Virus record (IMG/VR): IMGVR_UViG_3300042558_004148
Coordinates: 248,001-312,000 of that record
Reading direction: 5' to 3' (one strand)
Length of the DNA: 64,000 nt
The translations under genes and the position numbers were made by a program. Shown here piece after piece: positions 10,474 through 11,698 of this stretch. The notes under the pieces were generated by a model. The model was not told the origin of the DNA and made no database searches. It saw only the letters and a list, made by a program, of their open reading frames with translations. Within the stretch, counting starts at the first letter, position 1, and each line of letters opens with the position of its first letter.

Positions 10474-10643
10474 AGTCAGGTGGCGGAATTGGTAGACGCT
10501 ATTTTGAAAGCAAACAGTTGCAGGATTAGATCGGCACCAGCTAAGTAGTATCAAATGCCATTAAGGTACTGGGTCGTAATAACTGATATTAACCGCTCGC
10601 GGTTGGCATGTAATCCATGCAGGTTCGAGTCCTGCCCTGACTA
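10474..10643 (+). ncRNA. tRNA-like RNA (Leu-type acceptor/D/T arms) with a ~110 nt insert replacing the anticodon arm
   Basis: AGTCAGG-TGGCGGAATTGGTAGACGC ... GCAGG-TTCGAGT-CCTGC-CCTGACT-A. Confidence 0.7.
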
Positions 10644-10683
10644 CGAATTCTTATCGACGTTGATAAGAAGAAAAACAAATATA

Positions 10684-11142
10684 ATGAAAAGAACAAAATT
10701 AATTTTAATTGCGATGTTAAGTGTTTTGTCACTAAGTACATTCGCTCAATCCATTACATCGGTAGTTACCCCGGCAACTAGTGATACTTTATGCAATGGA
10801 TCAACCACTTTTACCGGAGCTAATCCATCAGCAGTGTTTATTTGGATGCAACAAGGGACAACACCAATTGCAACGTTTACATCGGATTCAACAACCTATA
10901 ATCTATGTCCAGGAATATATGATGTTCAAATTTGGAACAATATGACGGATACGATGTACTATGATACAGTCATTACCATCCTATCACCATCAACACATTT
11001 AGGAATCGATGAATTGACAAATGAAGCCAAAATTGTAGGAGTATTTGATTTAGTAGGTAAAGAATCTGAATTGGTAACAAATAAACCTCTGGTTTTGGTT
11101 TATAGTAACGGAACAAGAAAACGTAGATATATTACAGAATAA
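10684..11142 (+). CDS. secreted protein with signal peptide and T9SS-CTD-like tail
   Basis: MKRTKLILIAMLSVLSLSTFAQ; C-terminus LGIDEL...FDLVGK...VYSNGTRKRRYITE. Confidence 0.6.
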   Translation: MKRTKLILIAMLSVLSLSTFAQSITSVVTPATSDTLCNGSTTFTGANPSAVFIWMQQGTTPIATFTSDSTTYNLCPGIYDVQIWNNMTDTMYYDTVITILSPSTHLGIDELTNEAKIVGVFDLVGKESELVTNKPLVLVYSNGTRKRRYITE

Positions 11143-11149
11143 TAAAAAA

Positions 11150-11279
11150 AGTCAGGTGGCGGAATTGGTAGACGCTAGACAGGTAACCAACTACAACTGT
11201 AATAAACCCGCTGATCACGGTTAATAAGAACAGCTCTGTCGCAGAGGTTGGTATACAGGTTCGAATCCTGTCCTGGCTA
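11150..11279 (+). ncRNA. tRNA-like RNA with a ~70 nt branched insert
   Basis: same 5' end as 10474; ACAGG-TTCGAAT-CCTGT-CCTGGCT-A. Confidence 0.7.
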
Positions 11280-11424
11280 CTTAGCAAGGCATAAACGATA
11301 AGGAAAATCTGTCACAAGTTTATGTTAAGTTGCAGACAGACCGAAATGCTTACGGTTAACAGGGCTTACCCATAAAGTCCAGAGAGCATAATCTAACGGG
11401 TGACTGATGGAAAGACATCAAAAT

Positions 11425-11511
11425 AGTCAGGTGGTGTAATAGGCAACACCCTTCATTATCAGGCCCCGTAAGGCTGGAAGGACGACGCAGGTTCGAATCC
11501 TGTCCTGACCA
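11425..11511 (+). ncRNA. tRNA-like RNA with an extended stem capped by GTAA instead of an anticodon loop
   Basis: AGTCAGG-TGGTGTAATAGGCAACAC, CCTTC...CCGTAAGG...GAAGG, intact T-arm. Confidence 0.65.
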
Positions 11512-11632
11512 CTAAAACAACTAGCGGAGTAGGCACAAATCTTCGTTAACAGTGGTATTTAAGTAGGTTTGGGGATGCTGTGTAGTCCATTGAAAACTAA
11601 ACCGAAGATTGCTTATGTAGTTGTTTTTATAC

Positions 11633-11698
11633 AGTCAGATGAAAGTAGGCTAAGACGAATTAAGTTTCGCGTTGCAGGTTCGATTCCTGCTCTGACTA
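11633..11698 (+). ncRNA. 66 nt minimal tRNA-like RNA (degenerate D arm, 6 nt loop)
   Basis: AGTCAGA/TCTGACT acceptor, GCAGG-TTCGATT-CCTGC. Confidence 0.55.

Follow-up and report, generated by a model that had tools for sequence, protein, structure and literature searches.

tRNA-Leu shells without an anticodon and with swappable interiors in uncultured freshwater phages

Small RNAs that resemble parts of a tRNA but do not decode have been described in phages, viruses, bacteria and eukaryotes. In phage T4, species 1 RNA (rnaC, 139 nt) and species 2 RNA (rnaD) are small stable RNAs encoded in the tRNA cluster, on the tRNA strand, whose function is still unknown (PMC3014915, PMC9697503); rnaC has been unexplained for 50 years. 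Plant RNA viruses carry aminoacylatable tRNA-like structures (Val, His and Tyr classes) at the 3' ends of their genomes, which mimic the acceptor, T-arm and elbow part of tRNA for the host CCA enzyme, synthetase and elongation factor (PMC7749636, PMC8127992). Among bacterial and phage non-coding RNAs, tmRNA and the Y RNA-like YrlA join a tRNA-like module to a non-tRNA domain (PMC4201824). In MALAT1 mascRNA and the gammaherpesvirus 68 tRNA-miRNA (TMER) genes, tRNA-like folds without decoding function allow RNase P and tRNase Z to define the ends of linked non-coding RNAs. Finally, in the engineered 'tRNA scaffold' for recombinant RNA expression, the anticodon arm is replaced by an RNA of interest, and the tRNA body provides processing by RNase P and 3' enzymes and protection from nucleases.

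Here we investigated a 64,000-nt window (positions 248,001 to 312,000 of IMG/VR record IMGVR_UViG_3300042558_004148) of the 373-kb complete genome of a giant lake phage. An earlier note, made from the sequence alone, had pointed to four RNAs at 10474-11698 and one at 55655 that share an acceptor stem and an intact T arm, mostly with a Leu-like D arm, but in which unrelated structured inserts replace the anticodon arm. We confirm this observation, with the qualification that the inserts are unrelated but are clearly structured only in one of these RNAs and in one other sub-family. All five elements lie on the + strand: R1 at 10474-10643 (170 nt), R2 at 11150-11279 (130 nt), R3 at 11425-11511 (87 nt), R4 at 11633-11698 (66 nt) and R5 at 55655-55752 (98 nt). 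They share the 7-bp acceptor stem AGTCAG(G/A)/(C/T)CTGAC(T/C), discriminator A and an intact T arm, and none has a usable anticodon loop. The complete genome has exactly these five AGTCAG-type shells, all on one strand, and the same shell recurs in at least 138 other contigs, which is far beyond chance.

Against the Rfam tRNA model (RF00005), R5, R3 and R2 score 45.0, 37.8 and 33.1 bits, above the 29-bit gathering score, whereas R4 reaches 27.5 bits and R1 matches only through its T arm; all matches skip the anticodon arm as a local insertion. With a model built from the family, the five score 48 to 64 bits (R2 48.3, R3 62.6, R4 50.1 and R5 63.6). Without introns, ARAGORN calls none of them as tRNAs, and it finds no tmRNA. 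No other curated Rfam 15 family was matched within 10300-11900 at the gathering score or at E below 1; there were only chance-level hits far below their cut-offs.

R1 starts 6 nt after the stop codon of the ORF at 10261-10467. Its 5' half (10474-10499) comprises the acceptor strand and an exact Leu-type D arm, and its 3' half (10619-10643) comprises the T arm GCAGGTTCGAGTCCTGC, the acceptor strand and A73. The interior between them (10500-10618) is a conserved structured RNA motif, with a long-range helix AACAGUU/AACUG, a covarying CCAG/CUGG helix and conserved strands GCUAAGUAGU and UCGUAAUAACUG. It is 81% identical to a sequence of Proteus phage Brookers and stands alone, closed by a GCUGAU/AUCAGC helix, in 45 other phage contigs. 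In Brookers (OL539469) the free-standing motif lies in the early-left leader, at about 25546-25686. Neither the R1 interior nor the free-standing motif has an Rfam match.

R2 also has the exact Leu-type D arm, with a U3-G70 wobble in its acceptor stem; no sequence similar to its interior (11176-11254) was found in 2 Mb of phage DNA or in the cultured-phage collection. R3 has a different D arm (GGTGTAATAGGCAACACC), a 5-bp stem CCTTC/GAAGG closing a 22-nt loop that holds a small hairpin, a 5-nt variable loop and an A1-C72 mismatch. R4 is a minimal shell with acceptor AGTCAGA/TCTGACT, in which pair 7-66 shows a compensatory change from G7-C66 to A7-U66; it has no D arm and carries a 4-bp hairpin with a 6-nt loop. 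R5, with interior 55681-55727, has a close variant of the Leu-type D arm, so that the 'most' of the earlier note means three of five.

The spacer between R2 and R3 (X, 11280-11424) is non-coding and ends in a hairpin with a GAAAGA loop 4 nt before R3. It is conserved at 91-97% in two otherwise unrelated contigs, in one after an ordinary tRNA-Met and in the other between two other shells, and near-identical contigs occur in three RNA libraries. The spacer between R3 and R4 (Y, 11512-11632) is also non-coding, as no ORF of 40 aa or more starts and ends inside it.

Looking beyond this genome, we found a large family of at least 183 distinct shells in 138 viral or metagenome-assembled genome (MAG) contigs. 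An exact 16-mer of the 5' half alone hits at least 120 viral contigs. The core tRNA positions are conserved (U8 94%, A14 90%, A15 89%, G18G19, U48 85%, A73 90%), as are the flanks (U at -1 76%, C at +1 96%), although the census was seeded with exact shell words and the figures for the seeded positions are therefore inflated. In 149 distinct aligned matches, 99.4% of acceptor- and T-stem cells are paired and 11 of 12 pairs show compensatory change, with 68 double changes against 6.3 in shuffles and far lower values in slid controls. tRNA-Leu genes of Bacteroidota MAGs have the same D arm, a nearly identical T arm, A73, and C at +1 without an encoded CCA, but differ in the first three acceptor pairs. 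The family is virtually absent from cellular genomes and from cultured phages: the 22-mer of T arm plus acceptor occurs in only 18 of about 185,000 species genomes, all on MAG contigs, and no phage in the cultured-phage collection carries a full shell.

Shells are intergenic (4 of 166 overlap an ORF of 90 aa or more), often come right after a stop codon, and are co-oriented with their neighbors in 85-88% of cases. Where ordinary tRNAs are nearby they are on the same strand (64 of 64), but two thirds of loci hold none. Clustering of ORFs within 3 kb of shells gave no shared family; the best cluster, a putative large terminase named from its sequence only, is present in 10 of 120 loci. Scans for sigma-70 promoters and terminators were uninformative. 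Short contigs in freshwater RNA libraries carry the shell halves joined to other interiors at word depths of 44 to 216, and several begin 2 to 6 nt from the shell's 5' end. These are assembled contigs of other family members, for which DNA carry-over cannot be excluded; no CCA tails are visible in them, and the sequences beyond the 3' end are genomic.

The interiors fall into about 155 unrelated classes, with a median length of 52 nt and lengths reaching more than 130 nt. As a class they are barely more structured than flanking DNA (mean z of -0.66 against -0.29, with 8% below -2), and they share no motif, reading frame or excess of a closing helix. Apart from the R1 motif, a six-member interior sub-family has an 8-bp helix with three compensatory pairs. 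Loci with flanks about 88-96% identical carry unrelated interiors that were replaced whole, with breakpoints exactly after GACGC and before ACAGG, at the shell halves. Where an interior is retained it differs at 6 of 290 positions, against 451 of 3709 in the flanks (p = 1.3e-9), and is thus about 6-fold more conserved, although recent cassette transfer rather than purifying selection could account for this low divergence. We found no evidence for pairing targets within phage DNA. The longest complementary matches of the R1-R5 interiors to the complete genome are no better than shuffles, BLAST of 172 interiors against 2 Mb of phage DNA returned only other shells or the R1 motif, and duplex energies with the adjacent 150 nt on either side gave mean z of -0.22 and -0.02.

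Comparison with the described systems highlights both shared logic and differences. T4 rnaC ends in a perfect T arm (CCGGGUUCGAAUCCCGG) with acceptor-like pairing and no anticodon, but it is unrelated in sequence, gives only weak matches to the tRNA-Sec model (17.5 bits) and, through its T arm, to the mascRNA model (14 bits), has no Leu-type D arm and is not known as a multi-copy family with variable interiors; rnaD shows no tRNA-like match in our searches. The resemblance to rnaC is functional and architectural only. The plant virus structures are 3'-terminal pseudoknotted domains of RNA genomes, whereas the shells are discrete genes of DNA phages with a true 7-bp acceptor stem formed by their own 5' and 3' ends. 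tmRNA needs G3-U70 and a tag reading frame, whereas pair 3-70 is U-A in 137 of 149 shells. YrlA closes the acceptor stem with a loop and needs Ro60, whereas the shell ends are open and the complete genome has no TROVE gene. The mascRNA and TMER elements are eukaryotic or eukaryote-virus elements whose partner RNA lies outside the tRNA-like fold; here the variable part is inside it, although shells also bracket non-coding spacers. The engineered scaffold has the same architecture and presumed logic, but it is a laboratory design that keeps the anticodon stem as the junction, whereas here the junction is not a conserved helix, the variable arm is also lost, and the system is natural, multi-copy and exchanges cargo.

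We interpret R1 to R5 as members of a phage-borne family of RNAs derived from tRNA-Leu, in which the acceptor stem, D arm and elbow, T arm, A73 and gene flanks form a chassis for processing and stability and the anticodon and variable arms are replaced by a copy-specific payload. We hold this reading tentatively, with a probability of about 0.45. In this view, shells would be transcribed with their neighbors within operons or tRNA arrays, and the chassis would make the transcript a substrate for the host's tRNA maturation (RNase P at U-1/A1, 3' trimming and CCA completion), for which this phage also encodes its own CCA-type nucleotidyltransferase (154137-154556 of the complete genome). The chassis would fold into a stable L-shaped body that displays the interior where the anticodon arm would be. 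In R1 the payload is an autonomous structured phage RNA motif; in most copies it is a short, weakly structured segment that would act by pairing or by protein binding. Because the two chassis halves (about 26 and 25 nt) are nearly identical across phages, recombination within them would swap payloads as cassettes. Our data show family membership, RNA-level selection on the chassis, its tRNA-Leu origin, the whole replacement of interiors with breakpoints at the chassis, the conservation of retained interiors and the independent existence of the R1 payload. Processing, stability, CCA addition, any charging and what the payloads do are inferences. Near-invariance of the acceptor sequence is not required by processing enzymes and may point to an unknown sequence-specific partner, or to homogenization by recombination.

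The interpretation in the earlier note was partly supported. Of its three alternatives, tRNA-mimic scaffolds carrying cargo RNAs fare best, whereas decoys for anticodon nucleases or uncharged-tRNA sensors are not supported, as there is no anticodon loop to cleave or to pair with a codon and the interiors share no motif. Its third alternative, tRNAs with non-canonical introns, is very unlikely. With introns allowed, ARAGORN reports intron-bearing models for R1, R2 and R5, but its calls are mutually inconsistent (Ala-GGC, Leu-AAG, Thr-GGT and a fusion of R3 with R4), and only 37 of 183 shells get any call, with haphazard anticodons. Members of 65-73 nt have no room for an anticodon arm, no anticodon-stem halves flank the inserts, and there is no closing-helix or bulge-helix-bulge-type signal. 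The inserts are far shorter than group I introns and match no Rfam intron, the complete genome has no RtcB or splicing endonuclease, and it already has three ordinary tRNA-Leu genes. The note had named decay of the arms without compensatory change as the mark of plain pseudogenes; the outcome is against this reading, which is contradicted by the covariation and distribution data and which we consider equally improbable. Although the genome has more than 30 ordinary tRNAs and several other malformed tRNA-like genes, the same shell is preserved in at least 138 unrelated contigs with its core tertiary positions conserved, two thirds of loci have no tRNA array at all, and only the anticodon region differs, being replaced rather than eroded. 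The note recognized neither that this is a widespread family with cassette-like turnover of the interior nor that most interiors are not detectably structured.

Three further explanations are less likely than the chassis reading. The shells could be punctuation only, that is, RNase P and 3'-end processing signals that cut polycistronic transcripts and release the flanking non-coding stretches (X, Y and that after R5), as tRNAs do in mitochondria or the mascRNA element does in MALAT1, with interiors that have no function of their own. This is unlikely but the strongest rival: the conserved parts, including U at -1 and C at +1, are exactly those read by RNase P and the 3'-end enzymes, shells sit between co-oriented ORFs, R2, R3 and R4 bracket spacers, and most interiors look like random sequence. 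Counter to this are the conservation of retained interiors, the compensatory changes in two interior classes, the absence of shrinkage to minimal interiors, and D-arm core and Levitt-pair conservation beyond what a minimal RNase P substrate needs. Alternatively, and more doubtfully, the shell may be charged by host LeuRS, which does not read the anticodon, and act through its aminoacylated end, for example by EF-Tu binding for protection, as a leucine donor for a transferase, or as a sink for LeuRS or for an acceptor-end-targeting defense enzyme; the interior would be secondary. At the sequence level the family keeps the E. coli LeuRS identity set (A73, A14, the A15-U48 pair and G18G19) and the host-type D arm, minimal tRNA-Leu molecules lacking the anticodon and variable arms are reported to be LeuRS substrates, and the phage encodes a CCA-type enzyme. 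However, R3, R4 and a minority of family members have non-Leu D arms or none, yet keep the same acceptor and T arm, the first three acceptor pairs differ from host tRNA-Leu, no LeuRS-type gene is present in the phage, and the diversity, turnover and conservation of interiors are not explained. Similarly doubtful is a DNA-level explanation, in which the halves are mainly short conserved joints for recombination (module boundaries or a selfish gene-converting cassette) and the RNA is a by-product. Breakpoints at the halves, the many shell pairs that share homology on one flank only, and the near-invariant acceptor without an obvious RNA-level reason are consistent with this, and 8 of 155 interiors hold an internal T-arm-like hairpin, against 0.4 expected, which suggests nested recombination between tRNA-type genes. 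Yet the compensatory changes in both helices show selection on RNA pairing, conservation of U8, A14, A15, U48 and the T loop follows tRNA-core logic rather than recombination-site logic, and the strand bias and the presence in RNA libraries at high depth also argue against it.

tRNA-like non-coding RNAs are known in phages, but no family appears to have been described in which a conserved tRNA body carries a different interior in almost every copy and exchanges it between genomes. Our searches of the literature found neither the shell sequence, in the papers searched, nor a description of such a family, and one recent preprint on bacterial tRNA mimics concerns other families. If the chassis-payload reading is right, it reveals a common way for phages to make stable, precisely processed small RNAs in hosts, probably Bacteroidota, whose small-RNA biology is poorly known. 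It would also give hundreds of natural payloads to screen for anti-defense or regulatory activity, and show that the laboratory scaffold has a natural precedent. A bolder version, which we think rather unlikely, is that freshwater phages share the chassis as a standardized platform in which the host tRNA machinery matures, and perhaps leucylates, any payload, and whose identical halves let phages trade payloads by recombination. This would be an RNA-level counterpart of gene cassettes, with payloads diversifying in phage-host or phage-phage conflict, for example as guides, sponges or aptamers against defense or competitor functions. These genes also matter for annotation, as they are either missed or called as tRNAs or pseudo-tRNAs with spurious anticodons, which distorts the tRNA repertoires and codon-usage arguments made for phages.

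Other features of this genome were noted. R5 is preceded by a hairpin, ACTTG-GAAAGA-CAAGT, at 55635-55650. It is followed by a non-coding stretch (55753-55881) closed by AAAGCCACC (55755-55763) pairing with GGTGGCTTT (55871-55879) and then a T run, which may be a trailing RNA plus terminator of the same transcription unit; this is inferred from the sequence, as a simple terminator scan did not call it. Another odd gene, at 42301-42415 of the complete genome (G001:C1), shows a plausible CCTGTAA anticodon loop followed by a 37-nt insert, a point in favor of the intron reading. A further tRNA-like gene with a different acceptor (TGTTGTG/CACAACA) lies at 55477-55551 on the + strand, 103 nt upstream of R5; it scores 41.7 bits against the Rfam tRNA model, and ARAGORN calls it Ile with anticodon AAT, but its anticodon stem is poor.

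The sequence examined here is part of a 125,864-bp viral record, itself a fragment of a 373,467-bp phage genome with direct terminal repeats that is rated 100% complete (G001). The observation in the earlier note, that RNAs with a shared AGTCAG(G/A) acceptor and an intact T-arm lack a valid 7-nt anticodon loop, holds. The five elements all lie on the + strand, at the places the note gave: R1 at 10474-10643 (170 nt), R2 at 11150-11279 (130 nt), R3 at 11425-11511 (87 nt), R4 at 11633-11698 (66 nt) and R5 at 55655-55752 (98 nt). Each has a 7-bp acceptor stem of the form AGTCAG(G/A)/(C/T)CTGAC(T/C), discriminator A and a T arm of the form (A/G)CAGG-TTCGA(A/G/T)T-CCTG(T/C). 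R1 and R2 carry the exact D arm TGGCGGAATTGGTAGACGC and R5 a close variant, whereas R3 has another D arm and R4 has none. The Rfam tRNA model matches R5, R3 and R2 above its cut-off and R4 just below it, in every case skipping the anticodon arm. ARAGORN finds none of the five without introns, and when introns are allowed its calls contradict each other. The complete genome has exactly these five shells, as we term the conserved tRNA-like bodies, together with more than 30 ordinary tRNAs, three of them normal tRNA-Leu, in an array outside the window.

To place these elements in a wider context, we searched for related sequences in uncultured viruses. The first 16 bases of the shell occur in at least 120 IMG/VR contigs. 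In nearly all of these the 16-mer is followed by the rest of the D arm, then by 14 to more than 130 unrelated bases, and then by (T)ACAGGTTCGAATCCTGTCCTGACTA. A looser pattern gave 183 distinct shells. Conserved positions are U8 (94%), A14 (90%), A15 (89%), G18G19, U48 (85%), the T loop and A73 (90%), along with T at -1 (76%), an A-rich leader and C at +1 (96%). A covariance model built from 32 short members found 174 matches in 857 kb. On 149 distinct aligned matches, 99.4% of cells are paired, 11 of 12 pairs show compensatory change and 68 cells carry a double change, against 6.3 in shuffles, whereas slid controls pair 22-51%. The lowest-scoring matches include some ordinary tRNAs, which add to the covariation. 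Within the window, R4 itself carries a compensatory change at pair 7-66. In other words, the shell is an RNA under selection for a tRNA-like fold; it is neither a product of chance nor of decay.

The 22-mer spanning the T arm and acceptor occurs in only 18 of about 185,000 species genomes. All 18 are MAG contigs, mostly small and mostly assigned to Chitinophagia, Sediminibacterium, Flavobacterium, Saprospirales or Bacteroidia. tRNA-Leu genes from such MAGs have an identical or single-substitution D arm, a nearly identical T arm, A73, and C at +1 without an encoded CCA, although they differ in the first three acceptor pairs. The sequencing runs that contain this phage are lake-water metagenomes, and no phage in the cultured-phage collection searched carries a full shell. 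The family is therefore phage-borne and derived from tRNA-Leu, and we infer that its hosts are probably freshwater Bacteroidota.

Shells are intergenic: only 4 of 166 are overlapped by an ORF of 90 aa or more, and they are co-oriented with the upstream ORF in 85% and the downstream ORF in 88% of cases. Two thirds of loci hold no ordinary tRNA in the stretch examined; where one is present it lies a median of 303 nt away and on the same strand (64 of 64). Large phages have clusters, and one contig interleaves about 11 shells with about two dozen ordinary tRNAs. No protein family travels with the shells. In small phages (contigs L069, L113 and L120) the shell sits just upstream of a putative large-terminase gene, named from its sequence only, and is followed by a second anticodon-less tRNA-like gene with an 8-bp acceptor stem (CGGCTATG/CATGGCCG) and a tetraloop-capped stem; in contig L034 the two appear fused into one hybrid.

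In this window, R1 starts 6 nt after a stop codon and R2 also follows an ORF directly. The ORF between them (10684-11142; 152 aa, no Pfam match) begins with a lipoprotein or secretion-type signal sequence, MKRTKLILIAMLSVLSLSTFAQ, which by eye resembles those of Bacteroidota proteins. The ORF after R4 has a weak DnaG-type CHC2 zinc-ribbon match (22.3 bits, below the cut-off). R2, R3 and R4 are separated by non-coding spacers of 145 and 121 nt. The first of these, spacer X between R2 and R3 (11280-11424), is conserved at 91-97% in two otherwise unrelated contigs (L141:3446-3587, and L142, complement of about 470-630), each time sandwiched between tRNA-type genes. It is likely a separate small RNA released by tRNA-type processing. 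Four nucleotides upstream of R3 and of R5 (11405-11420 and 55635-55650) there is a hairpin with the same GAAAGA loop and compensatory stems (TGATG/CATCA and ACTTG/CAAGT), and the relative in L142 has the same hairpin sequence as the one before R3.

The 172 interiors examined fall into about 155 unrelated classes, with a median length of 52 nt. As a class they have no shared motif, are only slightly more structured than flanking DNA (mean z -0.66 against -0.29) and show no excess of a closing helix. This corrects the earlier note, which had described the inserts as structured. Yet three lines of evidence indicate that the interiors are not junk. The interior of R1 (10500-10618) is 81% identical over 87 nt to a stretch of Proteus phage Brookers, and belongs to a conserved structured RNA motif of about 110-160 nt, with covarying pairs, that is found in 45 viral contigs, Proteus phage Brookers included (loci L163:1480-1620, L164:278-473 and L165-L206 among them), and has no Rfam match. 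In those contigs it stands alone, closed by its own helix. In 22 of 42 loci a CI-like repressor lies about 1.5-2 kb upstream on the same strand, and in L165 a weak, sub-threshold RecT match lies about 1.5 kb downstream. This is the position of an early-left operon leader, so the motif is a candidate cis-acting or small regulatory RNA. A six-member interior sub-family from unrelated contexts keeps an 8-bp helix through three compensatory pairs. Finally, in five pairs of related phages that keep the same interior, it differs at 6 of 290 positions, whereas the flanking 400 nt on each side differ at 451 of 3709 positions (p = 1.3e-9). This means either purifying selection or recent transfer of the cassette.

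Related phages whose flanks are about 88-96% identical carry entirely different interiors at the same locus, as seen when contigs L069/L113 are compared with L120/L038 and with L034, and when L019/L091 are compared with L029. Homology breaks exactly after GACGC and resumes at ACAGG. An RNA-library contig shows the same for the R2 position, with a shell 5' half followed by 69 other bases and then by window positions 11252-11434 with two mismatches. Eight of 155 interiors contain an internal T-arm-like hairpin, against 0.4 expected, and a few shells carry hairpin inserts in the D loop; both point to frequent recombination among tRNA-type genes. Some family members (L029:484-643, L089:4212-4392 and L118:3737-3918) carry such a second insert, a long hairpin of about 30-65 nt, between AAT and GGTAGACGC. 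The L089 hairpin recurs (96% over 55 nt) elsewhere in contig L131, so it may be a small mobile hairpin.

Four freshwater RNA libraries contain short contigs in which the shell halves are joined to other interiors, at word depths of 44 to 216, whereas a coding piece of a relative of this phage reaches 2.3 in the same library. Several of these contigs begin 2 to 6 nt from the 5' end of the shell, and spacer X is covered by near-identical contigs in three libraries. This evidence for expression is suggestive only, as these are assembled contigs of other family members, DNA carry-over is possible and no CCA tails were seen.

The conserved features are the ones read by RNase P (U-1, the acceptor and T-arm stack, the elbow and the base at 73-74), by the 3'-end enzymes and by the CCA enzyme. 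They are also the E. coli LeuRS identity set. The phage adds its own CCA-adding-type nucleotidyltransferase (L214, G001:C1:154137-154556, - strand; PolyA_pol head domain, 63 bits), which fits the observation that its tRNA and shell genes encode C74 but not the full CCA. The complete genome has no RtcB, splicing endonuclease, Ro60 or LeuRS-type gene. We therefore favour a chassis-and-payload model, in which the chassis would give maturation and stability, the payload would do the work and differ per copy, and the identical halves would allow cassette exchange. Membership of the family, selection on its RNA fold and the replacement of interiors at shared loci rest directly on the sequence comparisons, whereas maturation, CCA addition, stability and any activity of the payloads are inferred. 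No complementarity of the interiors beyond chance was found to the phage's own genome, to the other phage DNA examined or to neighbouring sequence.

Other readings remain possible to differing degrees. The shells might serve purely as punctuation in longer transcripts, which we consider the least unlikely of the alternatives, but this is weakened by the conservation and covariation of interiors. Less likely is a leucylated mimic, a predicted activity that does not explain the interiors, and less likely still is a role mainly as a DNA-level recombination joint, which is weakened by the RNA covariation. Introns and pseudogenes are both contradicted by the data. The interpretation offered in the earlier note is thus partly supported: of its suggestions, tRNA-mimic scaffolds carrying cargo RNAs agree best with the evidence, whereas tRNAs with non-canonical introns do not.

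The nearest characterised natural analogue is T4 species 1 RNA (rnaC), a stable RNA in the T4 tRNA cluster that has a perfect T arm, acceptor-like ends and no anticodon, and still lacks an assigned role. It is unrelated in sequence to the shells. In architecture the shells match the laboratory tRNA scaffold, in presumed processing logic they match mascRNA and the herpesvirus tRNA-miRNA genes, and in enzyme mimicry they match plant-virus tRNA-like structures. In the literature searched, no paper holds the shell sequence or describes such a family, and Rfam 15 has no model for it. Phage and viral tRNA mimics are already known; what is unusual here is a hypervariable interior with cassette-like turnover, and a wide distribution in uncultured freshwater phages.

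The same genome holds further irregular tRNA-like genes. A gene at 55477-55551 is called Ile with the unusual anticodon AAT, but its anticodon stem is poor and its T arm resembles those of the shells, so it may be another non-decoding member with a different acceptor stem. A weak tRNA-like gene at 8654-8727 (25.4 bits, below the Rfam cut-off) is called by ARAGORN in permissive mode with anticodon CTA (amber-reading). Outside the window, the ordinary tRNA array holds further malformed genes (L146:2301-2415, L145:18938-19038 and L145:18787-18886, all on the - strand). One is a 116-nt gene with a CCTGTAA loop followed by a 37-nt insert that itself contains a T-arm-like hairpin, and a 200-nt gene lies next to it. 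A 101-nt gene has a Leu-type D arm with a different acceptor stem (GGTCCGG), and a 100-nt one was also seen.
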